64,000 bases of DNA, taken from positions 7,316,001-7,380,000 of the forward strand of contig OZ059897.1 in the NCBI GenBank assembly GCA_964057225.1. Reading direction: 5' to 3'. The stretch is from Auanema rhodensis (lineage: Eukaryota > Animalia > Nematoda). A program made the position numbers and the translations under genes. Shown in pieces: positions 4,862 to 43,000 of the stretch (positions are counted from its first letter, which is position 1; every line of letters begins with the position of its first letter). The notes under the pieces were generated by a model, which worked only from the letters and a program-made list of their open reading frames with translations, did not search any database and was not told the origin of the DNA.

Positions 4862-7800
4862 TTAGATATGGCCACGCATCATCAAGCCTGGCGAATCATC
4901 CTCGTCATCTGTCTCAGTCTCACGACATGGACGTTTTCTTGGAAGAGGAGGTGGTAAAGGAAGATAGGTCTTACGGCCAGGCTGTACGTCGACTGGTGTA
5001 ACCTGCAAAATTGTTAATTAGAAAGATTTTCCTTAAAATGTCACTCACTTCTTGGGGTGGTCCTGCAATATATAGCAGGACTGGCAAGAGAATCAGTCCG
5101 TTGATGATACCAATGACGATCAAAGCAGACATGACAATGAAAAAGTATTTAACGACAAATTCGAACTCAGAGAAGCCGAGCATAAGAATTCCGAGAAGTG
5201 TTGAGAAGGCTCCGTGAATAACTGGAACGAAGACACGGTTGACAGCAGCAGCAGTACGCTCTGGTCGAGTTCCAAGCTGGGTCAAGAAAGCCAAAACGAC
5301 GTGAGCTGTGAATTCAACACCAATTCCTACAGCAGTAATGAGGGTTACAGCTGAAACTGGGTTCATTTTGATTCCAGCCCAGCCTAAGAATCCAGCTAGC
5401 TCAATGGTCATAGCTGAAATAATATGGATTAGATTATAGAAGAGCAAAACAAAAAACATACCAACTAAAATAGCTAAAATGCTTAAAGCAGCCCATGGGT
5501 TGAAGAGAAGTAGAGAGATAACAATGAATACAGCTAAGGCGATCGTAGCAATAGCACGGAGGAGATTGCCATTGAGATGGAGGTACTGCTCCCAGAATGT
5601 GAAAGCGATACCCTGAGGGAAGTTGGGCAAGCCACTAGCAGTGAAATTATCACAAGTCTTTCTGATCTCCTCAATCATAGTAACAATGACAGAAGTATCA
5701 GTTAATCCAGTCAAATAGAAAGGAATTTGAGAGTAGGCGAGTTTCTCTGCTGGTGGAACAAGTCCTGGATTACGTCTTTCCAAAGACCACTTGGGTGGAG
5801 TTGGATAAAAAGATGCTTGACTGACGTAATACCTGTAGAAATGGGGGTAAAAAGATTCTAAAAAATACGCCTTACATCATATTCTCCTGGTTGAACCAAG
5901 CGGTCAAACAGTTGTAAAAACCTTCGTCGTTGATGGTTCCGGTGGAATCGACAAGCTTTACTTTACCAACACGTCCATGACAGTTGTAGTTGTTTCCGTA
6001 ACTACATACCAAACGGAGACCAGTCATGGCATCATCAGAAATATTTCCAATAACGTTTCCATTATGATCAATTCTACAGGAAAATAATGAAAAACTGAAC
6101 AACTAGTTTAGATTACTCACCTTTTGCTCTCTACAGCGCTTTCATAGGTAGTTTGAATACTCCTAAGCCAATCTCTCATCATTTCAAGCCAATATTTCTC
6201 TGTTGGACGATTATTAACCTTAATAACAAAACGAGACGAGGCTGAAAAAAACAACAATATTAGCAGCAACTATCAACTTATCTTACCGATTGTGTTACGA
6301 TAGTCCTCAATCACATGCTGTTGACTAGCATAGTCGATATTAGGTCCTTTAAGCACAGCAAACATGGGATAGAAACTGAAAGCATAATACATGAATAACT
6401 AGGATTGTAAAAAATTTCCAATTACCTGAAGTATTTATCTCTAGCTTGAAGGAACTTGGCTGGAGCTGTATGCTCTGGGAGAACATCAGACAACTCAAGA
6501 CCAATACTAGCTTGATGAATACCAACAAAGGAAATAGCGATCAAGGCACATGTACCGAAGAGGACGAAAGACTAGAATTTTAATTTGTTAATGAAAAAGA
6601 TGAATAAAACACTTACTCTAAACCATCCTCTCTCAATGAGTGGTACATAATATGTCTTGATGAAAGCTTGAAGGTTGAAAGATTGTTCAGGTACCTCCTC
6701 AATCAAATCTTTGTAAGTCATAGGGATATCACGACAAGAGGAAGGTTCTCCGATAGTTCTCTTTTGCTACAACATAAATATTAGGTATATAAGCAATTTA
6801 AGACTCTTACCTGAATTTGAGGCTTAGAAATCATGGAATAATTCTCTTCCCGAGTATCTCCATATAAGCAACACAAAATGTCTCTTCTACCAGCTTTACG
6901 ACGACGAAGATCAATAGAGATGATAGCCTGAACAACAAAACACATAATGGGAAAAGAAAAATAAACCCTACAGGATATACGGTGAGAATAGCAATGAAGT
7001 TGAAAGTCAGCAAAATAGAACTTTGAGCACAGAAAGATCTGAGAGCAGGAATTGGTAACAAAGTTCCTGCAAAAAGTTGTAATATCAGAAACTGCTCCAG
7101 AGAAATTAGAACTTACCGGCAAGGAAAGACAAAATGTTATTGATAGAAGTGCACAACAAGCTCATACCAGTTTCACGGAGAAGAATTCCCATCTCATGAC
7201 GTCCAGTCATCAGAAGGTCATCGTGATAGTTGTGAAGAAGCATGAACATGTTATCAACACCAATACCAAGAGTAAGGAAAGGCACAATCTGGGTTGTTGC
7301 GGCGTTGAACTCAATACCGAACCATGTTGCCAAGCCAAGTCCAGAGACTGATGCAAAGGTAACAGTAAGGACTCCGGCAAGAGCTAATCCCATGCAAGAT
7401 TGGGAAGCTGGAAGACATCCCTCTCTCTTGAATTGAGTCATCATGGCATAAACAAGCTAAACGATAACATTGAAATACAATACAAACTCAAAAAATGCTT
7501 ACCATCAAACCATATCCTACAAAGATAATGGTATAATTGAATTGACAGAATTCTTCCAACATATCAGCAATTGAGGTGGAAGCTAGAGGATGAATAGTTC
7601 TTCTCTCTTGGCCATTAACGTCAAAGTTATCGTGATGCTTGTACATGCGGGAAGTAAAGTTTCTCTGCCAGGCTTGAATAACTTTAGCTGCCAACTCCTC
7701 ATTCCAAACAGCAAGGTTACGAGCGGACTTGAAGCTTTTACGTTGTTCAGCAGTCATGTTAACCTTAATTAACACTATAACAAGATAGATAAATCTTCTA

Positions 7801-10427
7801 GCTTACTCTATCCTTGAAACGAAGGAACACATCATTAGGACTGGCAACAAGGAAAACACTTTGCAAAGCATCAGCGAAGTTCAGATGATTATCTGTGTGA
7901 GATCTCTTGGTACCTCCAAGGATCATATCTTCTGGCCAGCGCAAGACAGATGGAGCAAATCCTGGGCATCCACCAGTCATAGTAGATCCGTAATTAGGGA
8001 ACTTAGGGAATTCATCCTAAAAATGTCATTCATAGACAATGAAATGCAAAATTCAGATACAAACCTCAGTAAGGAAGTTTACCCATTTTCCACGATTTTC
8101 TTGCATCCATTTCATCATTCCAGATCTCATCTTCTTACAAGAATTTGCTGAAGAATATAAATTACAACTCGAAGCGAATATTCAAACATACTTAATTTTG
8201 TGTTATTTTGTTCAGGTGCAACAGTGGTTGTAGTTGTTGTGGTTGGAAGTGCAGCAGGTGTGCCATCAGTATCTCTTTTCTTTCTGGCTCCAAGTAGAGA
8301 AAACAGTGAGTTCAAAAGATCTGGAGCTTCACCACTCTCCTCTTGCTCTTCTTCATATACAACGTGGATTCCATTTTGTTCGGTGTATTCAACAAATCTT
8401 TCCAAGTATGGACAGACATCGTAATAATTTGGTGCAAGCGTTGGACATTCGGGATCGAGAGGATTCATGCAGGGACGATCAAGGTAGCCATGACCGAGAC
8501 CAGCCTAAACAAGAAAATAAGAAACCATATTGAGAACAGAACTACTCACTCGTTCGAAGAAAGAGAAATGAGATCCTAGTGACATAATAGAGTTAATTTC
8601 CGTTACGACAGCAATGGGATCAAAATTAGTCCATTTAATTTTATTAGATTTAGGAAGTGAGTTCAATAATCCACCAATAACTCCGAGATCGCTGGAAAAT
8701 AATTTACAGTTTTCATAGACAAGACCGAAAATGCTCACTTCTTGGTTACAGGGGGGAAAGGACCTAATGCTTTTCCTCCTTCCCAGAAACAATCAATGGG
8801 GGTAATCCAAATGCAAGGAACAATTCTTTCAATTACATGTTCAAATGACTTGGCCATGGGGTCGTCTCCGAGCGGTGCAGCAGGTTTGAAACAGATATCA
8901 TGGAGAGTCCAATTGCTAAGAGGACAAAAAAATAGAATAATGAAACAACAAACATTCATACCTTCCGTGAACTTCAACTTTCATTGTTGCAATCTCTTCC
9001 ATAATTTTTACATGTTTCAGTAATCCGTCTAGTGATAAAGCATTCTGTCCCGGAAATTCTGGTGTTTGGATCACAACCTTCAATGATCAACATGAGAAAA
9101 CAGAAAACAACTGACTAAAGAATACCTGATACCCTCCACCTAGTCCGTTTTCTCGAACAATTTCCACACTTTCAGAATCATTGAATTTAAGATTTTGCTG
9201 CACATTGTTAAGGAAATTAAGTTCTTCGTCTAGTCGTCCACCCTCTTAAAAAAAACATTAAATTTGAAAATCTGAGAAATAGAACTTACGAGCTACCCAC
9301 AGCTTGACTATATCTGTCTCGATACGGACATACTGGAGACCATAACAGCAGATAGAGAACAAAATCAAAATAGTACATATAACTGTGGAAGCATTAGCTT
9401 GTACAAAATTTCCTAAGGAGAAGAGAAGTTTTTGGATAAAACTTCTTGAGTACAAAGCCCATTGGTTTCCAGTGGCTTTTCCCTGAAAAATTTAAATCGT
9501 CAGCATTTTTCTTCACAGGAATTCAAGAAATTTCATGGTTTCATCGATGAACAAATCGCAGATTACTTCAACAAGAATTAAAGACCTACGCGACATTAAC
9601 ACTTTTGGCCTTGAATTCAAACATTAAACTCAATAGCGCACTTTTGTATTTCCGTGTGGTCAGTGGAATGGAAATATAGTAAAAAAGTATTGTTAAAACC
9701 AATATTTTCGTTGAAAATCAACTTGAATACAATTTGAATCATCTTTTTCCCATTAGAAGATAATTTCAACTATAGCTTATATATGAAAAATGCAAATAAG
9801 GTCATTCATGCCACTCTAATAAAGACATTTGCTCTCTCTCATTCTCTCATAGTAATTTCGAAAACGCCATCTGGTGTCAGTAGAGACAACAGAATGAATA
9901 CTAAACAGAGAAAACACAGAAAAATCGCAGAACTACACACGTGTATACATATTGTGCATCAAAACGTAGTCATCGTATGAAAGTTACAGGTAAACAAGGG
10001 GAAATAAACAAAATACTCCAAGTTAAGAAGATAAGAAAACTCACTCTTTTGATTTGTTGCAGACAAAGATCTGCATCACACCAAGACGGCCGTTGCCTAA
10101 ATTCTTTTTTCCACCTGCTATTATATTCATCTGAGCTAGATTTCCAAACAAGGCAACGATCAAGGTACTGAATAACAATACATGAAATTAAAGAAAAAGA
10201 AAAAGAAATTTACATTTAGAAATGAATTCCTATTACCGCTTATCAGCTCATTTGGAATATCGTAATCAGTTTCGGCATCGAAATAATCGTCCTCGTCTGG
10301 CGCTAAACCAGAAACAGTTTCAGTCAATACACACCGAATACTCACCTAGGTTTAGTAAATGTTGAGCAGATCGATTTGAAGGCCCCTGGGAACGCTTTGC
10401 TCCTGGTGGTTCAAGAAGTGTTAGCAT
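4862..10427 (-). CDS. ptc-1: Patched family RND/sterol-sensing-domain protein, multi-exon
   Basis: The N-terminus MLTLLEPPGAKRS...SAQHLLNLG matches my recollection of C. elegans PTC-1. Other motifs: SWCDADLCLQQI, ETDIVKLWV, PCIWITPIDCFWEG, the SSD with FNAATTQIVPFLTLGIGVDNMF, the second RND repeat GIGVEFTAHV, and SEFEFVVKYFF. The last exon ends ...PGLMMRGHI* (TAA 4864-4862). Confidence 0.95.
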
Positions 10428-13400
10428 AGGATATGGAAAGGAAAGTGCCACAGAAGAGCTTGACGCTTCTGTCGACACAAGTCCTGAAAACAACAGAAAC
10501 GTTAAACAGGGAAGCACAAATTAGCCTTAGAATTGTATAAATATAGATTGTACGTTTATATATATAAACCTATATATAAATAGAACATCAAAGAGAAAAG
10601 TAAAATACTGATAAGATAAAATATTTCGAGAAATATGTGAATCATTTAAGCAAAAAAGCAACATGAGTCATTTAAACAGAAGTATAGGCAACTATAGGCA
10701 TAGAGACGAAGAGAGTATTCAAACGTTATTGCTTGCGAGCGGAGAGAGGAAGAGAAAGAGAAGGAGACAGAAGAGAGGGCGAGCGCATGTCGCCCGCGTT
10801 GTCGCCAGCGAATTATGGGATAGAATGACGATCGATACACAGGAGGAAAATGAGGTGAACGGCAGCCAGCCCGCCAGCCCGACGACTGCCGGCCTGCCAC
10901 AGCCATTCCACATAGGAGATACGAATGGAGGCAGAAAACGAGAGACATGGAAAGACAGAGAGAAAAGAGCCATTTCTGAAAAATCGATTCACACAAAAAA
11001 AGAACTTGCCCGTGGCATTCATCGAGCCAACAGCGACATTGCATAGAAGATTAAAAAAGAACATGCAATATAAAAAGTAAGAACAAGTAAGAACAAGTAA
11101 CAAACATCAGAAAAGGAACTGAATAGTTGGACATTATCCAAGCTGAAGTTACACCATATAATAAAGAGCAGGAGAAGATTACAAGTTTTATAGCAACTAA
11201 GGCGTCCGAAAGATATGCTACATAGTTACGATATTGAACGATATATACGCCATTAGCCCAGGTGTGTAGTACATGGTTTTGGCGGATAGTAGATCACAAT
11301 TGATCTATATCAGATCGTGATAACTACATCTTGCATCCAAATATCTATGTTTCTATATGAATGCATATATATTTACAAATAATACGTTGTGAAAGAAATG
11401 AATTATAGCCAAATTAGTGATAGAATGAGGAGAAGAATGAGCACGCGTAATCAGGTGATTTTACCAAACAAGAACAGTTCCCTGAGTTGTGGGTGTATGT
11501 ATCAGATGACAAGAAATCCATTGCGATCATGTGCCATCAAAATACAGCTATACCCTTATCAGAGGTTCGGATTAAAATGAAAAGTACAAACATAAACCTG
11601 TGTGCTTCAATGAAAAGTGATAGAAAAAACCCTGAGGATGGTCTTATTGAGGAACTCTCTAAGTTTGTCATTTCCTACTAAAAGGAGAAACGAATTTGGT
11701 GATTGAGCTCTTAAAAGATCATTGGGACAGATAGTTTCAGCAGTCTGGCCGTGTAGACATTCAAAGCTCCAGCGTACTATGAACATCTGGATAGGGTATC
11801 CAGAGGTTGTACGCACCCAGAATACAAACGTGTCCCAGGCATATGGGATTGAAAAAAAGCATAGAGGAAGAAAGATATTACATATAGTTAAAAGAACCAA
11901 GCAGTAAACGGAGTTATCATATTGAAAACGATAGATGATACAGATTAAACAGCGCAACTTCATGGATGGAATAGAATAAACAAAATCGGATGACGTCAGT
12001 ATTTGAAATATACCTCGTGAACGGTTGACATGAGGGACTAGGTAGTGAATGAGTTGACATGATAGTTGGCGAAAGCAAAGGGAAGAATACTCTTTGGCGT
12101 CGGTGGCAATGCCATCGCAATTTTAATCGCTTTGAAGCACTTTATGGGCAACAATCAAGTGAGTGCTCATGTGAGAAGGGCTCAATTTCTCAACAGGCTG
12201 AAGCCGATGTTGCAACGACACAGAAACCCGTCTTTGTCGTTCAGTCAGAACACAAAATCGCCGCAACTGAAGCAATCAGCTCATTTGCATAGTAAGAGGA
12301 GTAGATAAACAAAAAATTAGAACTCTTTTCCCAAAAAGTGCAAAGTGTAAGAAAAATGCTCAGCTACCACTTTATTCAAGGTAAAATAAGGCTTATTTTA
12401 GTCAACACCAGTACTACTGCCAACAGCTCGCTGTACTGGCTGGCTTAACAGACAACCAGACAGAAAACACGATGAAGGCACTCGCCAAAAACAGCTAGAG
12501 TGGCAGGGAACCCGATCGTTTGTGGCCTAATATTTGTCAAAAAGCAGTCAGAATATATTAGTGGTTAAGCCATCTTCGAAAAAGAACAAAAATGATTCAA
12601 TAGTTAGTTGAAAATAGTGGTTATTGCTTGTGAAAGGATATCTGAGCTCTACAAAGAAGTTAAGATAAGTAATAGGGTAACTGCTCGCAAATCTCAAAAA
12701 CAAAATGAAACAGGCGTGAGAGACACATACACACACATACACATCACAAAAACGTTGTGACGGCATATGTTGCTTGGAACTGAAGAACGGCCACACATCA
12801 TTTTCAAGCTGAGTTCATCGCTCAAAAAAATAGATTTTAGCGACAATCGGAGGAATGCAGGCTAAAGACAGCTGTGTCTTAAGGAATCGGTGAGAAAGAG
12901 GAAAAAGAGAAAGAATTGGGTGCATTACATCGCCAGCCTTTCAAGCACTGGAAAAAATGACGAACAAGAGCATAAAGAAAGATAAAATATCACAAAAATG
13001 AGAAGTAGTGACAGTGAAAATGATGAAAGAGACCAGAAGGAGAGAGGGAAAATAGCGATACACAGCAGCATTGTTTAGTGACAGCTTTTCATCATTGTGG
13101 TACGCAATCACGTAATCTTTTCAGTCTTTTAAAGTGCAAATATCAAAATGGATGTAAATTAATAGAGAAGTTCGGTAGTATGAGATACTAAAAGCAAGAT
13201 AATTGAACAAACAAGATAAGGTTGGAGAATTACAAAAAACAGCGTCCTTTAAAGCAATCACTAATGATAGAGCACGTGGCGCCAATTCAAATATGTGCTG
13301 CTGAAATTTAAATATTTTTTTTCAGAAGAGCAGACTTTCTGCAGATTGTGACGACGATTTGGCATTTTAAAGTTTTTCGTTTAAAAATAAGATGATGTAA

Positions 13401-27900: not shown

Positions 27901-30900
27901 CCTTGCGTTAGAAGGAAGCAAAGACTTAAGGACAACAAATTCAGATAGACAACGTAAGTTTTCATTGAGGTATCTGATGTTATCAACGTTTGACTTGTTT
28001 CCTTTTTGTCTCTCCAAATTCAACTTTCCTCGTCTCGTTTACTCTCTTTTTCCATCCTCTCACACTGCTTCCCGCCGCCATTTTCTCGTTTTTAAAGAGT
28101 TTTCAACGCATTGTTAACATAAACGATTAGTTGAATAAGTAAGGATTGTAAAAGACGTTTTGTCGACGAATATTGGTAAATCAACATCAAATTTCAGTTG
28201 AGACGATAAAAAGGGAAGGGGGGGGAGGTTGCCAATTTCTCGCCTTTCTATTGTATCCGTTGTTTACTGATGAGCAAAAACTCCATATGATCGGGATAAG
28301 CAATTCGTAAGTCACAAGGTAATGAAATCAAAATCAGAAATCAAAAAAACAGAAGAAGAAGACGAAGAGGAAGAATTGAAAATGAAAGAGAACATCACCT
28401 TTGGTGCCATCTCGTCGGGAGCATGCTTGCTCAGCACGAGAGTAACTCGTGCATTCCATGATTGAGCCCATTCGGTCAACTGATTTGCAAAGATAACATC
28501 ATCTACTGTGCGTACACAATAAAGCAAGCAGATCCGACGAAGAGCAGAGTTGGAATTGTCTTCCGACAGTAAATGGTCCACAATTCGTACAAATGGTGCG
28601 ATTCCGGTTCCGGCTGCAGCAATGAGTAGGTGAGAAGCCTGAAAATGATGATGCAATAGAGTTGAAAGATCTCGAGAGATTTTCAGCAAGAGTATATGAG
28701 CAACGAAGCACTCCAAATACTCCAAAACGTCTCATGAGTATATCTTGGAGCACAACATAAGGTCAAATACATAAACCAGCACATATATCATTAAAATACA
28801 AACACATTTTGCTATATCGTAGTCAAAAAGAAAAATAAACAAGTGATTCAAAAGAAAATTCAAATGTAAATTGAAAATAAGAGCACAAGCTTTATGATGC
28901 TTTGAATTTTCATACACCAGCCTCATGAGCAGCTCTGAGAGCATTAAATGTAAATAGACTGTTTTCATTTGTTTTTTTGGCCCCTCATGTTTTGGCCTTC
29001 TGTCCATCATCATCAAGATTTCTTTATCTTTTCAATGCTTGATAAGAAAAGTCATGAGAATGAAAAGCTAATAAAGATTGAATTTCAAGAACTATTCCGT
29101 GTATATAGCCCATTCACTAGATACATACATCGACTGGCTCATGATTACGCATTCCACGTGAACGTCATTCTACACGAAGCAAGGGGTTGGGAGGGAGGGG
29201 GGCACAATTCGGCTGCTTTTTCATCTTTGTTACCGAATTTTCTTGTGTCATATTATCAAATCAAATGAGTAAAGTAGGAATAACATACGTTTTTCCAATC
29301 TTCTTCTTCAGTATACGGACCACGACACTCAATCATATCGCCGACTTGCCAATGACGAACTTGTGCTGATAATTGTCCATCCTTATAAACCTTAAAGGAT
29401 ATTTCGTTTAAAAATTAAACAGATGCTTGATAGTATTAAAGATTAATTCCCAACTCTTGGGCAGCTGCTACCTAGTCTCTGTTTATCTGTCTAGTTTCTC
29501 ATCACTTATCATCATGTTGTGGTCATTTGTGAATTTATCTGTTTTTTTTTGTTTTTTTTTAATAAAAAACAAAAATAAAAACATATTTCTTCTTCTTTTT
29601 CTTCAGAAAAAATATATAAACACGTATGATATGAGCATGTACATGTTGTTAAGTTGGCAAAAAAAGGTTTCAAGTATGTGTATACGCATGTTTGTACATG
29701 CTGAAGCTTTACCTCAACTCTCTAAATCATCATCACCCGTGACAACATCACTCAATTTCTCTTTCAATATTCATAATTTACCTTTATGGGAACTTCGAAA
29801 AATTCTTTTTCAACCCTTGTCGGAGTATACTGACGCGAAATGTAGTGATCATTCAAATTTAACCTACAAAAAAAATTATTTTAGCTGAAAATTTATTCTT
29901 TTTTTTTAATTTATTTATAATTCAAATTATTTTGTTTATGCACAGTTGCTAGTTCCTGAAAAAAAAGATTCAATTTGAAGACAGAAAAATTATTTTTTGA
30001 ATACAATCATAATAGAAATCTTTATTCTTATTTAGATAAATTATGAAGAAAAGTGCGCAGATGAAGATGGTAATACGGAGGAAAATAACATGAATTCTAG
30101 ATATTATTCTGCGTTAACTAGACAAATATTCAGATTAACTCATCTGAAATGTCTGAAATTTGATTTTCAGCATTAAAAAAGAAATGAAATTTGAGAATAA
30201 TTGAAGGTAGACGAACAACGAGACACTTTGTTTGCCCAAACTTCGTTCTATTGGCTTATTTTGGAGATCGTGAAGAAAAAATGCATAGGTCTAGGTGGAG
30301 GATGAGGGTGTTGGCAGAAAAAATTATTTAAAATAGTTTCTATCCTCTATTACTATGAATTACATAGTAATCATAAGGATATATCCCACAAGAGGCAAAT
30401 ATGGCTTTAAGAATGGACCAATAATTGGAGTCATTAGAATGTAATCAACAATCATCCAGTAAGCTTTAAATTGTAATCGACCCCATGATGGGAAAAAGCG
30501 GACATTCGTGTATGAGACATCAACTTTTCCCTGCTCCATACGCTTACGAGCCTGCTCAACCTGAAACAGTGAGATTATTTGAAGCTTAACTTAGTAATAC
30601 AGTATGTAAGAAAATACTCAAGAATTCGTCAAGTACAAACCTTTTGGAAGTTGCAGGTGCCATTGTTATCAGTGAAATGAAATCCGAATCTTCCAAGTTG
30701 CATTAGTTTAGATCCTCCATCAGTTTCACAATCAAGTTGGATGATATATGGAGGATTTTCTTGAGCAGTATACATCCATTCCCATGAGTGAGCAATTCTA
30801 TAAAAAATAAAGATAAATATATGAAATATATAGTTAATAATAGTTTGATATTTGATGATCCCCCCCCCCTCCCCTGTCTTTTTCTCTCTCTTTCTTTGTA

Positions 30901-33900
30901 GTTTGTACAAACAACATAGCCCAACTTAAAGAACTGAGACTTGTAGTTGTGAAATTTAACTGGCATACTTAGGTTAATAGACACTCACAAAACCAGAATA
31001 TAAAACTAAAAAAACATCGAAAAAAAATAAGACGTAATAATAGATTTAGAAAATACTTAAAAAGAAATTATAATGTGTGATTACACACTTCATCTCTTAA
31101 AAATGAACAAAAAACATGTAGCTAAGATAAGAAAATGAAAACACAACCGATCAGCAGGCATTACTATTATAAAATGAAATAATTTGCATAATTATTGTAC
31201 AATCAATCGATATTTGTACAAATAAATAATTTTTAATATTTTCTCCGGAATATCCAGTTTTCATAATATTTCCGTTTTTCTTCTTTATTTTTAATAAGTT
31301 GTCATGAAAATAACTTGCTTGTATCTTGTACTCTAGATGAACTTCATAGCTCATTGAGTAAGGTTAGAGAAGACTAGTGTATAATACGATTTCCAAGTAA
31401 AATATCGTCAAAATACGGTAAAAAACGATATTTAGATTGAAAATAACGAAAAATTGCAAAGTATACTGTATGTCTTCCAAGTGTTTTTCATGTGAAATTT
31501 CAGGAATAAAGAATTGAAGATCTTACTTGTGAGGAATGAATGCACATCGAGGTTTTTCCCAAGTATGGCATTGATGGATCATTACTCCCATATCTGGAGT
31601 ATACCAGTGAGCAAGTTTATCAGAAAGTCGTTCAAAGAATTCCAATGTATCATTGTTGGCACGGATGAAGAAGTTAGCTCCTGAAAATAATAGGAATAAC
31701 TGTTCTCAAATTAGTTCTTTTTTTCTAGTTTTGAGAGAAAGAGAGAGAGAGGATAGAGAGAGATTTCCTTTAAGATTAAAGAATTTCAGAAGTCGAGATG
31801 AAGAAACTATAATTCTTCACCAATTTCCCCAAACCCTCTCTTCTCACCAAACGCATTTTTTTTGAAAATCGTCCAGTTTCCTTCTGAACATTTCAACTAT
31901 TACATACCATAAATAGGCAGAAAATGATGATACATGGAAATAAAAGAAAGAAACTATTGAGAAATAAAAAAAACGACAAAAAACTCTATTTTCTATCTAT
32001 TCATCAGGTATTTTCAAGTTTAACAGCCTTATCTATTTTATATTGAAATGAAAATTCAAGCGTACCGTTTACCCATTCAGCCCTCATGCTGTTCTCATCG
32101 ATACCGATTTGATCAAAGATGGCATCATAAGACATATCATCTTCATATCCCAACTCAAAGAGATTTCTTCTCCAGAATGTATCTTGTTGCATCATCCAGA
32201 AAGATTTTCCTCTTCGAAGTAAAGCAACAGCCAAGTTGGATCGAAGTAAGTAGATTGTCTGATATGGTCCTTCAGCGAAACTGAATGGCTTCTGAAACAT
32301 CATATAGTCTTAATCTGATCACATTTCCGCTAATCTTTAACATTTTCATTAGTTCGCGAGAATTAAATTACTGAATCTTATTGGAATAACTTTCAAACTA
32401 CTTTGAAACAGTGAAATATTAGTATTCCCTTCTCAACTCTATCTAAGTATATTACTGTTTTTCGTTAACTCAATCACATTCCAAACTGTCAATTCTCTGT
32501 AACCTCCTGATTTGTCTAGAATTTCATGTTCTAATTCTGAATGAAATTTCATCACACATGACTGATTTTTCAATAATTCAAATATTATATTCGATGAATA
32601 ATGGTATATATCGAGAATTAACGTCGTCTACATACAGTCGAGCCATCATCATGAATGTCTATAAAAAGAAAAAAGTTTGGGAATGGGCTATGTGTAGACG
32701 ATAGACCTCTGCGAACAAGAGAACGATGATGAGGATGAAATGGATAACTTTCAAATGAACATATACAACATGAGGATGATGACGAACGATGACCTTGCAG
32801 GTTTGACATCCCTCACCTTTCGTCCTCCTAGTACCCTGCATACCATACTCCTGCACCTCATCCCATGCTTTACTCTCTTCGTCCCTCTTAAACTTGGTTT
32901 CGCATCATTTAACACATACGCCTACATTCACAGTCATACTACTCTAAATTTATCGGATTTGCTATTGATCACTTGACCGTCAGACCTTCCGGTAATCCGG
33001 AAAAGAGGAGAAACGTTCTGAAGATAATCGTTTACCAGACGGAATTAGACCAATCTTATCTTCTTTCGCTCCTTCTCTTACTAAATCTCCTTCAAATTTC
33101 CATTCTCTTAAACTCTCTTATAGTATTCTTAGTGGGCTTTCCTCTTAAGTATACGAAATAAGGACAAAAAAATGTTTAAGAAAATCCGAAGAACAATCTT
33201 TGAAGAACAAAAGTAAAATCGAATTTGAAATTGATGATGAATTTGCGTGATTGTCTCTACAAATCAAAAGATCATCTTTCATTTGTTTACGAAAATAAGA
33301 TTGTTCGATTAAATTTAATTAAAGTTGATAATTATGATTTCAATCCGCTTAATTATCGGAATAAATGAGCGAAAACACTTGAAAAAACCCTAAATCAGGA
33401 CACAAATTGTTTTGTGGGCTAAGACTCTGCTGCTTATTATGAACTAGTTTAAACATATTCGAACGAAAAATCGACACTCTTTTCCGGTTTAAACGTTTTT
33501 TTTTGGTAGAGGGGAGGGGGCTTTATCACACTTTATATTAAATATTTTCAGAAGCCAGAAAAAATTTTCCTTAAACAAACAGCAATTAATTTCAAAATCC
33601 CGAACATTCTCAGTTTTTATTTTTATGAAAAAAAAGAAGAAAACTCACATAGAGACTTGGTGTTGGCCAATGGAATTGACGAATTTGTGGCCAAGCTTTC
33701 TTCAATTCATCACGAGCAACTGTATCCAAAGTAACGAAGATGAGACGCTCGTGAACTCCATCGAGAGTGGCGGTGTTACACAAGAAGTTGTATGTCATGT
33801 TGAGAGCATACTGATTCAGAAGTAAAATTGCGGGAGGACGGGTGAATTCGGTATCTAATGTGTGAATGAGGTCTTCAAATTCGGGAGAATTCTCAATCAA

Positions 33901-36284
33901 ACGAATAGCTACGGAATCTCCGTGGCTCTTAACGTAGCGAACGGCGGCAATAGCATTTTGAGTTTTACGGAGAACCAGCAGACCGAATACGAACCAGAAT
34001 CCATAAAAACACAGCATGACAATACGTGAAATCCAGTGCCACTGACGTGGTGAGATCCAAACAACATCTTCAGTTTTACCCACAATTTTCTTCTGTGTAG
34101 TATTCTTAGGTTTCTGTTCTACAGCAGTAGAAGCAGATTTTTCATTCTTTTCACGTTCACTCTTGCTTGTCTGAACGTTACTACCAGCAGTCGAAGGAGA
34201 AATACGATGGCGCAAGCCTGTGCCTGTCGTCATCTGAAACAGACGGCAAATATGAGGATATGTAGAAAGAAGCAAAGCAAAAGTCGTGAAAAAAATGAAA
34301 TAAATGTTAAAACACGGAAAGCTGAAAAATGATTATGCAGGAATGAAATACGATCAGAAAGACAATGAATTAATAAAGAATTCTAATGAAAAATGAATTA
34401 GAAGAAAACAGAATCACATAATTAGGAACACTTATTAGAGCTGACGACTATTTCCGAGCAATACATAACAGCAAAATGACATTTTTTCTAGGAATTGATG
34501 TACAAATGATCTTATTGTTTGATGTTAAACTGTTCGCCAAACCAGTACAACAATTTCGAAGAGGAGGAGCCGAAGTTCATGTTCTATCAATAAGAGTTGG
34601 AAGCATGAAATTGATGAGAAGCAGCTAATGAAGGTGTGTATATGTGCTGACCATCCATGATAAAAATATTATGAACAGAGTAAAAGAGTTAAGTGAATAT
34701 TCTGAGAAAGAGAGAAAGATCGAATGAGAGATTCCTGATTCAGGTGCGAAATGGATGAAAGAAAAACGGTCAAGAAGCGAGACGACCCCTCGACAATACG
34801 TCAAGAAGTACTGATTGCGGTAGATACGAAGACTTGAACGAGAGATAGCAAGTTACGGACATTCTGACGCGTTTTTTTTCTCAAACATTTTCAGAAATAG
34901 TCCGTTCACTGGAATTAGGTTTGAAATGATTGCTGGACGTTGTTCAGAAATGCAGTAAATAGGAAAGGTTGGAAGAGTCTCCAACTGAGATCTGAAAGTC
35001 AGATTGAACATCTGCCTCCGAATTCTGTTCTCAATTTTTGATCAACCAAGTCGAATGAAATGAAAGATATTTCATAAATGATAGAGAATATGCTCGTAAG
35101 GCCAGAAAAATCTCGAAATATCCTATAAAGTAGTTATAAATCGATTTATCGGCTCAATAAAACTTCATCGAATGAACCTCATCGTTGGAACATCAGTCCG
35201 ACCATAGTCAGTAGGAACGATTCTGTTAGATCGATTGATCAGCAGAAGTACATACGCCCGACAAAGTTCAGACGGTAACGCTGACGTAGGCCTTCAACAT
35301 TCTATTCTAGATGAATAGACAACGATAAGTGTAGATGGCAGGCGATTAAGGAATTACTGGATTTTGAGCAGTCGAGTGATATCATCAGGTAAACAGATAC
35401 ATGTTCTCGAATCTCCCATTCTTCCAAGCTCGTCAATCACTTTTGAAAATCATTAACCTTCACATGGTTTAGTATTTTTTTATTTTAAAAAGTTTAAAGG
35501 CATTCGTAAGAAGAAGAAAACTAATGAAACAAACAAAACAAACTATTCAGAGAAACATGGTGCCAATACCAACTTCTACAGAAACTGTACATGTATGTGT
35601 GTGTGTGTGTGTGTGTGTATGTGGTAAACATGTAATATAGATGAGGATGTTTTGGGAAGCGAAAAGAAGTAATAGTTGAACACTTAGAAGAAAAAAAAGA
35701 AGTTCAAGTGAAAGAGAGAGAGAGCAAAAGAGAGAGAGGGACAGAGAGAAAGAGAGAGAGAGACAGGATGGGTAATACTTAGGCAAGAGAAGGAAATAGG
35801 AGAAGACAAGGAACGTATTTCAGGTAGTTTCCGGTTCCTTATGTCTAATTGTGGCGTCTCTGTCTATATATGATTGTCTTCTGTTATGAGCAGGTTGCTT
35901 CATCGAACAATAGCGACCAAGAGAATGTTGGTCATTATTAACAAGTTATCTTTCATAAACATTCTGAGAATGAGACACAGGAAAGAGAAAGAATTTAGGA
36001 TGCTATGCTGCAGGTTGATGATGAAACGAAATGATGATCGAGAGCAGGTTTGAAACATCGAAAGGAAGATTAAGGTAGACGGAAAAGCAAGCACAAAAAT
36101 ATCATAACAGACGTAGATATCAGTCAAGACGTGTATGGCAGTATTAAAGTAAAATCAGTAAAGATAACATCGATAGATCGGCCAAGGCTACCGCAAGTAA
36201 GGCTGGTGTACATTCAACCTTCAGCTATCTCATCCCCCAGGCCACAGGGGGTTGAAAGATAGTAGAGCCTAACGACATGGACAG

Positions 36285-36377
<93 letters not shown>

Positions 36378-39372
36378 AAGAGAAAAGGGAGAAAGAGCGA
36401 AAGGTAGAAGGCAATGATGAAACAGAGAAAAAGAGATTGAAAATGGAAATATAGATAGACAGCCCATAGTTTAGGGCTATGAAGGGAAATAGAGGTCAAC
36501 GTCAGGATGAGTATGACATCAAAGTGTTCCGTGAAAATCTCTAAATAACGAATGTTGAAAGCAAAAAACAGCATGTTTTCAGAAGCAAAAAACCATGTTT
36601 TTATGTGCTCATGGCTAATGCCACGAGAACAAACTAATTAATCTAGTACAATGTGAAGGTATTTCAGAATTGAAGAAGTTGCACAGTTGACGGCAGAAGG
36701 GATTATTGCAAAAAGTGGAGACAGCTAAAGCCTGTAAATGACCCAATTCAGTTCACAAGACCGGCCCAGTGATCCGGCACCCGCATGGTCGGTGGAAATC
36801 GTTGAGTCTCCAAACGTTCAGTGATAATCAGTGCAGCGTAAAAGTGATAAATTATATGCGAACGAGTCTGGCGCTGAATCTCATCCTGGGATGATAAAAT
36901 AGTTCTACTCTTCAAGTTTCAAGCCAAGGATATCGCACTTAAAGATAAAAAGAGAGAATGGACGTCCGAAAAGTTGAATAAGCGTATAATTATGACAAAG
37001 GAGATGAACAGTAGAATGATACTGAATACCATACATTCAAAGAATCTGGAGCAGATCATGACAGCGTTAGAACAATGACTAAAGGATGATTTGCACTAAG
37101 CGATCTGTAAAGGGTCAAAAAGGGACGGCGAGACGGAGGACGGATTGAATCGACAATCATCAAGATGACCTTGCACCCAACCAACTATGTGCTTGGTAAA
37201 GTTAAATTGGCTTGTAATCACGCTTTGTAACAAGAAATCATAGGATTAACCTTCCGATGTTGGGAACTCAAAAATAGCGTGGATGACATATATCAACCTA
37301 GATACAATTCATCAAGCAATTACGCTGAAAACAACAACTTAATGCTACGTTGCTAATATGCTAATATGCTAATTTGATGAACTAAAAATTATGAAAAAGC
37401 GAATTCATTTACACAAGCAATAATCTCTCATGCGGTTGCATTTTACGTTTACATCTTATCTTTTTTCAGCTTATTTTCCAAACATGGCAATTATTAACAT
37501 TTAAAACAACCATTGGATTATACCATGCTCCAAAGCTACGAATTAGCAATGGCGCAAACTACTGATCTATTGCTTAACTATACGGAATAAAGCGTTAGCT
37601 ATAAAGCGCTGTTTTAGTTCAATTTCTTTTTTTTTAAAGCTACTAATCTAATAGACATGAGTCGCCATCAACGACGATATGATGATCGCAGGCATTATCA
37701 ACCCAGGTCTGCTAAACGTGGGGGAGCTGTACCTGATAGGTGAGTAAATATTGTATTTACAACTCCGATTGTTTAATTTTCAGGTGGCTCCATTATGATG
37801 CTGTTGGAAAGGATATAGAAGGAACTAGATTTGTTCCATTTAAGACTCCTCTTCATCCTCATGTTTTCAACAACCCTAACTTGTATGATGATACGTTTCA
37901 TGTAGATATTCTTCTTCAATATGTAAGTTTTCGTTAAGATTGTTAAGTTATATCCATTGTATATAGGCTGCAGAGGCTGGACACTCTATTGGTCTTGTAA
38001 TTGATTTAACTAATACTGATAGATATTATGACAAAACACAATGGGAGAAACACGGAGTGTTGTACGAGTAAGTTGTTTCTGAAGTTAAAACATTGGTTGA
38101 TACACATTGGTTTCAGAAAAGTTCGTTGTCCTGGGCACGAAGTTCACGAAAGAGAAGATGTAGTGGCAAAATTTTTCGCAATTGTAGATAATTATTTCAA
38201 TACACGTAAAGACAGTAAGATTTAAGCTTCGAAACAAGTTTTAAAAAATTTCATTTTTTTCAGCTTCACTTATTGGAGTTCATTGTACACACGGGCTCAA
38301 TAGAACGGGTTATTTGATATGTCGATATTTAATTGAGCGCTTAGGATGGTCCGCTGATCAAGCAATAGCAAGTAAGTTTTCAAAATGCATATATTTTAAA
38401 ATTGTAGTTATGTAGGTTTCGAAGATGCTAGAGGACATCCAATAGAACGACCGCAATACAAAGAGAAGCTTCACGAAGTTGAAGCTCGAAAAGTAATAAT
38501 AGTACAATAGAACAACTAGAGCATATTTTTGAATTTCAGAAAAGTTCTGAGAAATTCGAACAAGTCGAACAAGGTGATGTAGGAAACTGCAATGTAATTG
38601 ATGATAAGGAAGAGGTGAAGTCTAACAATAGTCAAGCTGTACCAGACTTATGATGTCTCTTGTTACAAAAATTGTTGTTATATTGTTGTTTTGTTATGAA
38701 AATCCTACCAGCATTGTTAGAAGAATTGAGTAAAATTAAATATTCTAATTTTGACGGAACTTACGTGAACTAGCATTTTATTTATCAGAGAACTAGCAAC
38801 TGTGCAGGTTGGTTTCACTTTTGAATTTTGAAATATGGTAAATGAGCGCACCTTATTCTTATATGACTAGCGATTGGAATCAGAATTGGCTGTGGAGTTT
38901 TGAGTTTAACAAGCACTGTGTGATCGTTTAGATTTTCAATATGCGCGAGCTCTAATGGTCTGAAATAAAGTATTAGAAAGATCCCCTTAGACTATAAAAC
39001 CTAAATTCAGAAGAAAACCAGTCCTTAGATTCGTTTGTAGGTTCCGAGTCATCGAAAACATGCTCATATAAAGTTTTATCTTCTAAAGCAAGAAAGAAGT
39101 ATTCATAAGACTGTTAATATATACCATGCTTGATAAGTTTACTATATTCTTTTGCCCAGCGAACTACATCATCAAAGTGTATATCGAAAACACATGGTTT
39201 ACATGATTGACCACAACAATCCTGCTCGTTTAAGATAAATATTTGAAAGAGAGAGCAAATAAAAAACCTGAGGAAATGGTTCGTTAGGCTCTTCCTCATA
39301 TGTGTTCCCGCATTCAGTGACATGCTTCCGAACTAGGCGAACAATCTCATCGTCGGCTTTCTTCAGGTTCAT
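18319..39372 (-). CDS. NADH-cytochrome b5 reductase-like protein (CYB5RL-type: N-terminal oxidoreductase-like/OXLD1 Cys domain + FAD- and NAD-binding FNR fold), 9 exons, 335 aa
   Basis: Phase-consistent GT-AG exons: 39372-39268, 39221-39125 ([13 protein letters not shown]), 39082-39001, 38959-38852, 29863-29782 (ISRQYTP, the FAD RxYT motif), 29390-29289 (GQLS...GDMIECRGP), 28638-28399 ([12 protein letters not shown] binding), 26984-26886 (GRLSQEIM), 18411-18319 ([12 protein letters not shown]...RFHS*). They total 1008 nt with no internal stop. Confidence 0.93.
19650..19691 (+). repeat. (TC)n microsatellite
   Basis: Perfect TC run in the last CYB5RL intron. Confidence 0.95.
21235..21315 (+). 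repeat. (AG)n microsatellite
   Basis: About 40 perfect AG units; a further imperfect AG tract lies at ~20960-21035. Confidence 0.95.
24873..24938 (+). repeat. (GA)n microsatellite
   Basis: About 33 perfect GA units. Confidence 0.95.
30360..34233 (-). CDS. Nucleotide-diphospho-sugar transferase family protein (Nucleotid_trans-like, type II membrane), 5 exons, 440 aa, nested on the same strand in CYB5RL intron 4
   Basis: tttcag|ATG at 34233. Exons 34233-33649, 32291-32066, 31680-31527, 30797-30641 and 30560-30360 are all in phase. There is an N-terminal TM segment ([18 protein letters not shown]), then [38 protein letters not shown] and a hydrophobic C-terminus ending YILMITM*. Confidence 0.88.
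36290..36371 (+). repeat. (GA)n microsatellite
   Basis: About 41 perfect GA units. A short (TG)n also lies at ~35595-35618. Confidence 0.95.
37657..38653 (+). CDS. pir-1: RNA 5'-tri/diphosphatase, DUSP11/PIR1 family, 7 exons, nested antisense in CYB5RL intron 4
   Basis: MSRHQRR...VPDRWLHY...[10 protein letters not shown]...[14 protein letters not shown]...VRCPGH...[21 protein letters not shown]...[11 protein letters not shown]. The catalytic [10 protein letters not shown] motif is present. No guanylyltransferase domain follows (stop TGA 38651-38653), so this is not the capping enzyme. Confidence 0.93.
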
Positions 39373-39390
39373 CTAAATTTGGATATTACA

Positions 39391-39907
39391 ATGGCTTGTC
39401 CAAGACATCTAAATAATTTTGAATGTTGCGGAACACTTATAAAATGTCCCTATATAAAGGTAAATATTTGAAAATTTAAATTTGAAAATAGAAATAATTC
39501 TAGGAGCATCATGCTTCACCATTTCATATTGTAAATCACATTTTTCAATGTCGACAATATCATGGTAATACTGAATTGGTGAAGTAAATTGCTATGTTAG
39601 AAAACGAATGTTTATAATGAAAACATTAAGATGTGATTGTAATACAAAACATTTCTTTCCTGAAGCCGAAAGAACGTTTCATGATAAGTATTGCGACAAT
39701 CGAGGGTTTCAAGAGATTTTTAGAATATTATATACAAAACCTGCAACTGATAGTGGTGGAACTTACTTTAAGTTAACTAGAGTTATGATAAACTATTCAG
39801 ATACGGACGACTCTTCCAATATATCTACAGCTGATTTATCAATGGATTCTATGATAGAAGATCAAGGACACAACTTCTTTCTAGATGACTATTGTTCTGA
39901 AGCATAA
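39391..39907 (+). CDS. gtsf-1: Tandem CHHC (U11-48K-type) zinc-finger protein with acidic tail; gametocyte-specific factor 1 homolog
   Basis: ATG 39391; exons 39391-39459, 39504-39583 and 39631-39907 (a possible in-frame 45/48-nt intron ends at 39800). There are two exact C-x5-H-x9-H-x3-C fingers, CPYIKEH-HASPFHIVN-H-IFQ-C and CDCNTKH-FFPEAERTF-H-DKY-C, followed by a D/S-rich tail. This is the GTSF1 architecture. Confidence 0.82.
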
Positions 39908-40085
39908 GGTTACTCAACACGAGATGCGTCAAATGGCTAGTTATTCGGACGTGTCGTTACAGAAAAAAGAAAAAGAACAAGAAAAAAAGAAAAAAATTTA
40001 TTATTAAGCAATTCGCAGAGATCAATCATGTTGCAATCAGTATTGTTATCACCCTTATTACAAGCAGAGCAAAAGAAGCAGTATA

Positions 40086-43000
40086 TTAGAATCGTTTTTT
40101 GTTGTTTTTCTTTTTGTTCTTTTTCACCGAAGTAGAATTTTCGGAACCAGCTGAAACAAAATAAAATATATTGAAAATTTAAAAAAGAAACTACGTTGTG
40201 TAGCCGGAACTTCAGTTTTACTTGCCACAGGATGGTTTGCATTGTTCCCTTTTTTCGAATTTATATTAGCTTCAATGCGTCGTTCAGTCTGAACAGTATC
40301 ATCACTTTGCAGAGAAACAAGTTTGCACGGAAATAAGACTAATACCTGTGTTTTTATGGTTGGGTCACCAATTTGACTTGCAATCGACTGATAGCTGTGA
40401 CTAGCTGAAATGAAACATGAGCATTCGCTACGTAATACTAAATTAACTTGGCATCATAGAAAATCCGGAGCTTTCTATCTTAAATAAATGATTTTCAGCA
40501 GTGAGTAATGGCTTCTCGTCTTCAGATTTACCTGAAAAATGAACATACCTTCAAAGTTTACAACTAAAGTTACTCACATTCATTGTCTGTTTTTCCCTCA
40601 TTGACGGAAGCATAAGCATAGACTGTTTTTGGCTTAAACAACAAATATGGAATGGAATTTAGAGGAACTTTACCTTGATATAAGAAAGCTCGACATCATT
40701 TAAATAACGAGCTTTTTGTCGCTCATTTGTTTCCACAATGAAATCAGATAGAAGAGAAATTAATATACGTAATGAGGGAATAATTTCCTAGAATAGGAAT
40801 TGAAAAATATTTTAAAATTATTTCTCTTTGAAAACTTACGGTTTTTGACATCTGAGAGAACATAACCGCTTGACTGAATAAAACATTAAGCTGAATAGAT
40901 ACAACAGCAGGACGTTGATAGTTCAATCCTGTCATCACATGTTCGGAAGCACTGGAAAATTAAAGTTCTATGAAAATCATCAAAATTAAAGTTACCCAGT
41001 AATATTGGTAGACATGCACATCTTATTTCTTCGCAATAAAGTCATCTAGGAGTCATTTTACTTTACATTTGAAGAAAATTGAATCAGAATACCTCATTTT
41101 CCATATGAGCTCTAGCCAACTCGCAAAATCCTTGAAGTAACTCTTGAGCTATCAGCTTTGGTTCTGCAACTTTGTCCAGTGAACCTTCAAGAACTGGGGT
41201 ATCTTCGCCAACTTCAGGATTGAGAACCTATATATAAACAATCATTTAAGAAATAGCTGGTAGAATCATACTCTCAAATATGCCAACTGAGCTGCTTTCG
41301 CGACGATAAGTATAGGTTGGATAAATTGCAGTCCCCAGTAAGAAAATTCACTCAAATATTTAAGTGTATTACTACAGTGGAAAGGTCCCAGAAGCTTAAA
41401 AAACAAAAAGTTTGATAGAAACATGAACAAATCGAACCTCGATCAACCGATTAAGAAGTGGAGTAAGACTGGCAATTCGAACAGCAGCATACGATCTGCC
41501 TGTGCAATCAACCAAAGCTATAGCAATCTGCTCAACCAATAGATCAGGTAAAGGAGTAATCGCAATACCTAAATAAAGAGTTTAAATCACAAATCACTCT
41601 ACTAGCTAACCTTCTTTTAATAGATTGAGAGTCATGTCAACATCGAATAAGCCGAGTTCAAATAAAGACCGCAAGAAGCAGTTAACCGTGGCAGATTTGA
41701 AATCAACAACAATTTGCTCACATTTCTCTTGAACTGATAAAGGCAATGCTTGGAACAAACCACAAGGAATCTGAAACATATTGATTAATGACATTTCAAA
41801 AATTTGGAACACATTACCTGTTGTTTAGGATTTCCCAACGAGAATCCAAACCATTCGATAAGGCAGTATCTGACCCACCAAGGATTCTGTGACAATTTGT
41901 TAAGAATGAAAGCGGATGACTTTGCACAGAAAACAATCTTGTCGTCTAAAGGGGAAGTAATAAACTGTGAATGTTTTCAGAATCAATACCTCTAAGTTTG
42001 GTTCCCAAAGCTTTGAGAATCAATCTACATAGATTGGACATCTCTGGTTCGTTTTTCTCATATTGAGAGTAGAAGCAATGAATGAGTATAAGCAATTCAG
42101 GTGCAGGAACACTGTGACATTCTAAGAGAAAAAAATGCAAAACTTTGAGACAATAGAGCAAAATTTACTTTTCCAGTCACTACCAACACTATTGGTCCAC
42201 TTGAAAGATGTATCTTTAACTCCAAGACATTGAAGAATTCTGAAGATCAAATGTTACAAAATAAGGAAAAGTTTACTCCAACCTATGAACGATTTTCAAC
42301 AGAGTCATACGTTCCGGACTTGTGATTGAAGCGGACAATAGCTTAGGAAGAATGAAAAACTGGAGAATATCAGAACTATTCAACAAAGCTTCTTCTATAA
42401 CTTCACCAAAAACTTCACGGACAACTTGGCCTGTATTTTTCATAAAAATTACTTTAAATGCTTAGGAACTTACCATCAGGCCCCTTTTCTCGGATTAGGG
42501 CTAGTTTTCTTCGACAAATTGATGTTACAAGGTAGGTATAATTATCTCGGAACTCTACAGAGCCATGTCTAAAGGATAAAAATGGAATAAACCAGAAATA
42601 ATAACGATTAACCTGGTAGCTTCTTTTTCAAAAATCGACTTGAGGATTGTCACTAGGAGAGGTTCTTTAGTTCCTTCAGCGATGTTGAAAGAATAGGCAT
42701 ATAGAGAAGATGAAGCTTGTAAAATTTTCAAAACTCCAGGCACAACAGCCTTGTTATCAACCGAATAAAGAATAAGCTTTTCTGTTGTTTCATAAGGTGA
42801 CATAAGCAAGAAGAACAAGAGCTAAAAGGAAGTTTCTCTAAGGAAAAAATATTATGAATTACCTTATTTTGAATATTTGCAAACTTTTCAACATTTTGCT
42901 GCAAATCATTGTGATCGCCCAAAGAATTTAAATATTGAGTTAGCCGTGTGGAGTATTGCTGAATAAATAATCGATCATTTCTGATTTGAAGAAAGATAAA

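Follow-up and report, generated by a model that had tools for sequence, protein, structure and literature searches.

We describe two small-RNA biogenesis genes, pir-1 and gtsf-1, in a 64,000-nucleotide (nt) stretch of the Auanema rhodensis genome (assembly GCA_964057225.1, contig OZ059897.1, positions 7,316,001 to 7,380,000 of the forward strand). This whole stretch is the window, and coordinates refer to it unless another locus is named. Spliced RNA contigs and the domain and finger evidence confirm that the two genes are consecutive on the + strand. The coordinates place the gtsf-1 ATG 737 bp beyond the end of the pir-1 CDS (39391-38653-1), the distance given in the initial annotation. A gene for a CYB5RL-type reductase is interleaved with both on the opposite strand. 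PIR-1 is an RNA polyphosphatase that takes the beta and gamma phosphates off triphosphorylated RNA and co-purifies with Dicer/ERI complexes, GTSF-1 binds RRF-3, and both proteins are needed for 26G RNAs. Our RNA evidence consists of assembled contigs, not reads, from four runs of one study (X1-X4), with contig depth being a poor measure of expression; statements on RNA joints and contig pieces at the locus refer to those listed for it. Across the window G+C is 35.5%, introns measure 44-49 nt and acceptors read TTTCAG.

The pir-1 messenger RNA (mRNA) spans 37563-38740 on the + strand, with a coding sequence (CDS) of seven exons at 37657-38653 (37657-37739, 37784-37922, 37967-38067, 38117-38214, 38264-38371, 38416-38492 and 38540-38653; ATG at 37657, stop at 38651-38653) and a 3' untranslated region (UTR) of ~85 nt. 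All six introns are seen as GT..AG joints within a single spliced contig (833-891 nt) in each of the four runs. The contigs start at different points (37563, 37581, 37611 and 37627) and end at 38730-38740 in every run. Every start lies upstream of an acceptor-like TTTTTTTAAAG at 37639 and is without leader sequence, and pir-1 may not be trans-spliced.

Several lines of evidence identify this phosphatase gene. Its active-site exon (38264-38371) carries the P-loop HCxxGxxR(S/T) of the RNA-triphosphatase subgroup, matches Pfam DSPc with 39 bits, and finds its best PDB matches in a capping-enzyme triphosphatase, baculovirus BVP and human DUSP11. In contrast to the capping enzyme CEL-1, the protein is a stand-alone phosphatase, as the complete spliced contig ends at ~38736 with no guanylyltransferase domain. 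When the second exon (46 residues) served as a phmmer query, 16 proteins were returned, all PIR-1-like. The closest protein relative is P0001 of Auanema sp. JU1783, and a word search with P0001 retrieved nematode PIR-1 proteins, including Caenorhabditis elegans PIR-1 and BMA-PIR-1, plus a second nematode group named after F54C8.4. Compared exon by exon, the window gene shows 55% identity with P0001, 47% with C. elegans PIR-1 and 37-38% with proteins of the F54C8.4 type. In a maximum-likelihood tree in which the syntenic P0001 took the place of the window protein, and in which the base of the PIR-1 group is weakly supported, P0001 groups with C. elegans and Brugia PIR-1 outside the F54C8.4 clade (support 100/100). 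Thus, on DSPc match, tree and identity, the naming of this gene as the pir-1 orthologue in the initial annotation holds and is well supported.

The gtsf-1 orthologue occupies 39367-39908 on the + strand, with a 5'UTR at 39367-39390 and a CDS model of three exons (39391-39459, 39504-39583 and 39631-39907, stop at 39905-39907), both coding introns being predicted and absent from the joints listed. It encodes two N-terminal fingers of the form C-X5-H-X9-H-X3-C separated by a linker of 11 residues. Finger 1, read across the predicted exon 1/2 junction, is C-PYIKE-H-HASPFHIVN-H-IFQ-C, and finger 2 (39632-39694) is C-DCNTK-H-FFPEAERTF-H-DKY-C. In the genomic loci scanned, the strict CHHC pattern shows a single occurrence per locus, always downstream of pir-1.

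Because single exons miss the search thresholds, the CHHC gene of the window is linked to GTSF1 transitively, via a finger-2 profile and via P0023, the product of an intron-less strongylid mRNA discussed below. The three window exons match the GTSF part of P0023 in order (tblastn summed E 3e-8); that half of P0023 in turn matches both fingers of mouse GTSF1 (PDB 6x46, E 3.4e-8), and P0023 matches Pfam zf-U11-48K in two stretches with 33 bits. The finger-2 profile, built from six syntenic genes with the window included, retrieved from the whole PDB only GTSF1, GTSF1 and U11-48K, the top GTSF1 match having E 0.0045. Nematode GTSF-1 has been reported as a single GTSF1 orthologue in each of C. elegans, C. 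briggsae and P. pacificus, binding RRF-3 and required for 26G RNAs (PMC13650160, 2026). The same work places the zinc-finger region of Ppa-GTSF-1 at residues 110-194 and names W39 and R42 as key residues of C. elegans GTSF-1 for binding the RRF-3 N-terminal domain (PMC13650160). Taken together, architecture, synteny and the reported single copy make it reasonably supported that the CHHC gene is the orthologue of C. elegans gtsf-1 (T06A10.3); tandem CHHC fingers and the link through P0023 thus uphold the second identity given in the initial annotation.

The pairing extends well beyond A. rhodensis. PIR-1 contexts of other nematodes were scanned with the strict CHHC pattern, with tblastn or with both. 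In five more clade V genomes pir-1 has a CHHC gene downstream of it on its own strand: Auanema sp. JU1783 (locus L001), C. auriculariae (L002), C. angaria (L006), Pristionchus mayeri (L007) and Diploscapter pachys (L008). The gap between the genes is 737 bp in JU1783 (11011-11749), where the CYB5RL ATG stands 10 nt from the gtsf-1 ATG, 500 bp in D. pachys and 341 bp in P. mayeri. In C. angaria the distance from pir-1 to the start of a called 199-aa gene with a weak zf-U11-48K match is 210 bp; the first CHHC exon of this gene lacks an ATG and must have another exon upstream of it. The C. auriculariae gene prediction merges the pair into a single fused protein of 461 aa (P0012). Both Auanema and both Caenorhabditis species have CYB5RL 5' exons between pir-1 and gtsf-1, and Diploscapter and Pristionchus do not. 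With five further genomes and a fused mRNA in a sixth lineage, the linkage is not unique to this assembly, and judged from these loci it is ancient, not an oddity of one genome.

In C. elegans, Ancylostoma ceylanicum, Dirofilaria immitis and Steinernema carpocapsae, the scan up to 10 kb from pir-1 revealed no CHHC gene; as short split exons may escape detection, the negatives for the last three species weigh less than the positives in other genomes. The C. elegans result agrees with the initial annotation, according to which the pair is not adjacent there; pir-1 of C. elegans lies on chromosome II between sec-5 and an RRM gene, with dpl-1 also nearby. The hookworm A. ceylanicum (locus L011, 10001-16610) retains pir-1 inside CYB5RL, with Oxidored-like exons, and has no CHHC gene there, nor is a CHHC exon detectable in the ~900 bp from the CYB5RL start to the next gene; gtsf-1 seems to have left the pir-1/CYB5RL locus in this species.

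Some features of these loci deserve mention in their own right. The 737-bp gap is identical in both Auanema species despite indels right after the stop and just 55% PIR-1 identity, and most of it consists of CYB5RL coding exons on the opposite strand (38653-39391 in the window; 11011-11749 in JU1783). The fingers of C. auriculariae (L002, 14574-15532) are non-canonical, with finger 2 reading C-X4-C-X9-H-X3-C and finger 1 having extra residues in the prediction; this departure may be either true divergence or a mis-spliced gene model. Steinernema carpocapsae (locus L010) has two PIR-1-type DSPc genes 1.8 kb apart, at 7443-8155 (-) and 10001-11303 (+), and the Steinernema proteins form their own long-branched clade in the tree.

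In one lineage the two genes are found in a single mRNA. A 1172-nt Logan contig (L003, run SRR12213817) has a 44-nt 5'UTR, one open reading frame (ORF) and an AATAAA near its end, and encodes the 337-aa P0023. This protein consists of a complete PIR-1 catalytic domain, minus the non-conserved tail, in frame with GTSF-1 Met1 (...KRILKK|MTCPRH...), and among 132 proteins retrieved it is the only one with CHHC fingers. The contig joins the penultimate pir-1 exon to the first gtsf-1 coding exon, with the junction nucleotides ...CTAAAGAAG|ATGACCTGT.... Angiostrongylus and Parelaphostrongylus proteins share 77-79% identity with its PIR-1 half, which points to a metastrongyloid-like strongylid as the source. 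An assembly chimera at a low-complexity run was considered and rejected, the junction sequence not being of low complexity. Splicing of a read-through transcript from pir-1 into gtsf-1 would give just such an mRNA.

The RNA of A. rhodensis itself places a leader exon of gtsf-1 close behind pir-1. A low-depth contig of run X1 starts with AGCAACTGTG (38795-38804) and resumes from 39364, and a + strand GT..AG intron at 38808-39366 is the one canonical way to read it. The 38807|39367 joint reaches an acceptor 24 nt before the gtsf-1 ATG and defines an upstream non-coding exon on the + strand, of which the last 13 nt are seen (38795-38807, donor 38807|38808; one contig of one run). This leader exon lies ~50-70 nt beyond the pir-1 3' end (38730-38740) and is non-coding, with an in-frame TGA at 38766-38768 and no later ATG. 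An acceptor-like TTTATTTATCAG at 38777-38788 would give a leader exon of 19 nt. The joint fits read-through from pir-1, a mini-exon behind TTTATTTATCAG that accepts a spliced leader (SL), or equally a promoter in the ~60 nt between; it suggests co-transcription and does not prove it.

The gtsf-1 5' intron contains, on the opposite strand, coding exons 1-4 of the CYB5RL gene (39372-39268, 39221-39125, 39082-39001 and 38959-38852), with the CYB5RL ATG at 39372, 18 nt from that of gtsf-1. The intron 1 joint is seen in RNA contigs, bin depths fit the exon sizes, exon 2 matches Oxidored-like (PF09791) with 28 bits against a cut-off of 24, and the exons are 57-88% identical to those of Auanema sp. 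JU1783. A ~9-kb intron follows (29862-38851, - strand), holding pir-1 on the opposite strand and a nested gene on the same strand. RNA contigs join the exon end at 38852 to 29832-29861 (a 255-nt loose end at 38850, mapping uniquely), which bears out the earlier placement of pir-1 in a CYB5RL intron. The downstream exons (28315-29861, - strand) supply the RxYTP flavin motif and the NAD-binding domain: an ORF at 29764-29856 has RQYTP, and one at 28315-28725 matches NAD_binding_1 (PF00175) with 36 bits against a cut-off of 22. Judged by its Oxidored-like domain, flavin motif and NAD-binding domain, this minus-strand gene is a CYB5RL-type reductase. We know of no small-RNA link for CYB5RL.

The initial annotation had placed gtsf-1 in an antisense outron of CYB5RL, and here the RNA calls for a different structure: a cis-spliced 5'UTR intron and an overlapping 5'UTR exon. 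Record 6 of run X2 (279 nt) is composed of 39210-39220 (11 nt), 39267-39372 (106 nt), 39767-39908 (142 nt) and 39963-39982 (20 nt). The skipped 39373-39766 begins with CT and ends with AC, and is therefore a minus-strand cis-splice onto the acceptor right before the CYB5RL ATG. This makes 39767-39908 a CYB5RL 5'UTR exon on the - strand, spliced over 39766-39373 and antisense to the final 141 nt of gtsf-1 coding sequence, an assignment resting on the RNA contig data and on arithmetic with record lengths and bin depths. A single constant contig depth, 6.1 in run X3 and 5.9 in run X4, accounts for all bins over 38864-39908, with zero cover at 39455-39651. Reading 39767-39908 as gtsf-1 coverage was rejected, record length and depth arithmetic both assigning the piece to the CYB5RL contig.

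The loose end behind 39908 in the X2 contig is identical to 39963-39982, and since the joint 39908|39963 reads GT..AG in the + direction, this contig mixes both strands. We read the joint as a gtsf-1 3'UTR intron (39909-39962, + strand), with a 3'UTR exon from 39963 (seen to 39982) that enters the 3' end of a convergent gene (~39981-40007). The 3' part of that upstream minus-strand gene (40007-42400) is represented by a 3.0-kb spliced contig with CT..AC joints that ends at 40007 in all four runs. Its syntenic counterpart in JU1783 is annotated TPR_Edg1, homologous ORFs are present in the window and in JU1783, and by this synteny it is Edg1-TPR-like. An A-rich stretch of AAAAAG repeats lies where the two 3' ends meet (39956-40006); it is of low complexity and masked in read mapping, and the exact 3' ends and the size of the overlap are therefore uncertain.

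Our preferred reading, held with moderate confidence, is that the pir-1 and gtsf-1 orthologues form an ancient same-strand pair, interleaved with antisense CYB5RL and most likely in part co-transcribed in an operon-like manner. The pair would predate the split of Pristionchus, Auanema, Diploscapter, basal Caenorhabditis and at least one strongylid lineage, and would have been broken up in the lineage toward C. elegans. Its interleaving with CYB5RL is threefold, with pir-1 in the 9-kb CYB5RL intron, CYB5RL exons 1-4 in the gtsf-1 5' intron and the CYB5RL 5'UTR exon over the end of the gtsf-1 CDS. If gtsf-1 transcription starts at or directly behind the pir-1 3' end, the genes would most likely be at least partly co-transcribed, and in the metastrongyloid-like worm the same read-through may have been spliced into the PIR-1::GTSF-1 fusion mRNA. 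The 38807|39367 joint, the ATG-less first CHHC exon of C. angaria, the fused prediction in C. auriculariae and the fused contig L003 make co-transcription plausible. Whereas the gene identities, the splice structure, the conserved linkage and the fused mRNA are shown, we infer that co-transcription proceeds from one promoter. The linkage itself may have been kept because both proteins act in the RRF-3/Dicer (ERI) pathway.

Several observations weigh against this reading, and with them the idea of a co-regulated operon put forward in the initial annotation stands only in part: the joint is compatible with co-transcription, and tight co-expression is not evident from the contigs. Neither SL1 nor SL2 is found among the contig ends listed, and contigs seldom retain leaders; the pir-1 contigs never enter gtsf-1 in any of the four runs, and among the pieces listed from these runs no A. 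rhodensis contig spans both coding regions. Support for the joint comes to 13 nt of a single low-depth contig, from one of the four runs, and a separate gtsf-1 promoter in the ~60 nt behind the pir-1 3' end would yield it as well. Whereas pir-1 is fully assembled in every run, with contig depths of 33-78, gtsf-1 is represented in two of the four by fragments with a depth of ~3. An account in which the neighbours have separate promoters and no shared regulation accommodates these data, and it is a possible one, though we do not think it probable. The genes would then be together by inherited synteny, which their interleaving with CYB5RL makes hard to break, with the joint merely marking a gtsf-1 first exon that happens to adjoin pir-1 and the fused mRNA being rare read-through noise. 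The discrete pir-1 3' end at 38730-38740, the very unequal depths and the missing SL2 all suit such an arrangement, as do the nesting of pir-1 in CYB5RL that persists in A. ceylanicum without gtsf-1 and the fact that C. elegans functions with both genes unlinked. However, Diploscapter and Pristionchus keep the pair without CYB5RL exons between, which argues that locking by CYB5RL is not the sole cause, and their spacing of 341-500 bp is operon-like; moreover, the fused contig resembles a complete mRNA, not a fragment.

It is unlikely that the locus is a device for generating double-stranded RNA (dsRNA), as the initial annotation suggested, with antisense transcripts of CYB5RL and of the upstream gene pairing with pir-1 and gtsf-1 to feed Dicer and exert small-RNA feedback on ERI genes. 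Physical sense/antisense overlap is the sole support for such feedback: at least 142 nt of mature-mRNA complementarity between the gtsf-1 3' CDS and the CYB5RL 5'UTR exon, the convergence and overlap of gtsf-1 with the upstream minus-strand gene at their 3' ends, a pir-1 wholly antisense to the CYB5RL intron at the pre-mRNA level, and interleaving that is kept in Auanema sp. JU1783, C. angaria and C. auriculariae. Yet antisense genes commonly overlap where nematode genomes are compact, and Diploscapter and Pristionchus retain the pair without antisense exons. We regard as highly unlikely that the CHHC gene is a paralogue, or a CHHC protein of the U11-48K or TRM13 type, and not the gtsf-1 orthologue. 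Two results tell against orthology: single window exons fall below Pfam and PDB thresholds, and word-index protein searches with the last gtsf-1 exon and with the C. auriculariae GTSF-like tail found no relatives. Two canonical N-terminal fingers in tandem within a ~140-aa protein nevertheless constitute the architecture of GTSF1, whereas U11-48K and TRM13 are single-finger proteins, and the syntenic orthologue P0023 matches both mouse GTSF1 fingers. In addition, finger 1 of the Pristionchus neighbour lies ~120 codons (introns included) past the called start, which fits residues 110-194 of Ppa-GTSF-1, and the genus is reported to be single-copy for GTSF-1.

A bolder extension of the operon-like reading can be offered tentatively. 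The pair may be an operon of ancient origin within clade V, and its two proteins may act as one physical unit, in which GTSF-1 would tether PIR-1 to RRF-3 so that triphosphorylated RRF-3 products are trimmed on site for Dicer; some strongylids would then have hard-wired the arrangement as a fusion protein. Conservation of the pair across Pristionchus, Auanema, Diploscapter and basal Caenorhabditis is guilt-by-association evidence for joint action, to which the in-frame fusion adds. These findings bear on how PIR-1 reaches RRF-3 products, and predict contact between PIR-1 and GTSF-1 and a functional fusion. The locus also lends itself to studying the co-existence of an operon-like gene pair with its antisense host gene. 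We found no mention of pir-1/gtsf-1 linkage or fusion in the literature searched.

Further features surround the pair. A Nucleotid_trans (PF03407) gene on the minus strand lies upstream of pir-1 in JU1783, C. auriculariae, C. angaria and even Dirofilaria (window 29864-37600; L001 4390-7414; L002 2349-7524; L006 6105-8402; L009 1-4311, all on the - strand). In Caenorhabditis and Auanema it is flanked by pir-1 on one side and the NAD-binding exons of CYB5RL on the other, and is the same-strand nested gene of the large intron; in C. angaria it is predicted fused with the NAD-binding part of CYB5RL. A long (GA)n microsatellite at 36280-36420 produces Glu-Arg and Leu-Ser pseudo-ORFs on both strands. 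An Rfam scan of the window gave a single gathering-level match and nothing else, a tRNA gene at 292-364 on the - strand (69.7 bits).

Compared with known systems, the window pir-1 resembles C. elegans PIR-1 (T23G7.5, DUSP11 family) in its HCxxGxNR P-loop, its N-terminal PDRW...GTRF.PFKTPL, its single domain of ~240 aa, its 47% exon-wise identity and the shared clade of the syntenic JU1783 protein. It differs in setting, as C. elegans pir-1 has neither a CHHC gene nor CYB5RL nearby, whereas the window gene is nested in a CYB5RL intron with gtsf-1 next. The host gene shares the Oxidored-like CCGxxCxxCVF, the RxYTP flavin motif and NAD_binding_1 with human CYB5RL (NADH-cytochrome b5 reductase-like), and unlike the human gene it matters here only as host and antisense partner. 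The window gtsf-1 has in common with published nematode GTSF-1 (PMC13650160) and mouse GTSF1 (PDB 6x46) the N-terminal tandem CHHC fingers, C-X5-H-X9-H-X3-C, with a linker of 11-13 residues, followed by an acidic tail of ~75-100 residues. In contrast to these proteins it is very divergent, its individual exons missing Pfam zf-U11-48K, and it is linked to pir-1, a linkage unmentioned in PMC13650160.

The PIR-1::GTSF-1 fusion is known from one assembled contig of one public run, unlike established conjoined-gene or Rosetta-stone fusions, and resembles them in its in-frame exon join, as read-through fusions of functionally linked neighbours arise. With respect to nematode SL2-type operons, the window departs from the familiar pattern in that no SL2 was found among its contig ends and in that the leader exon of gtsf-1 is cis-spliced, across a 559-nt intron in which four exons of an antisense gene lie. 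What it shares with such operons is the common strand, the related function of the two genes, the ~50-70 nt from the upstream 3' end to the next exon, and the preservation of the pair across genera.

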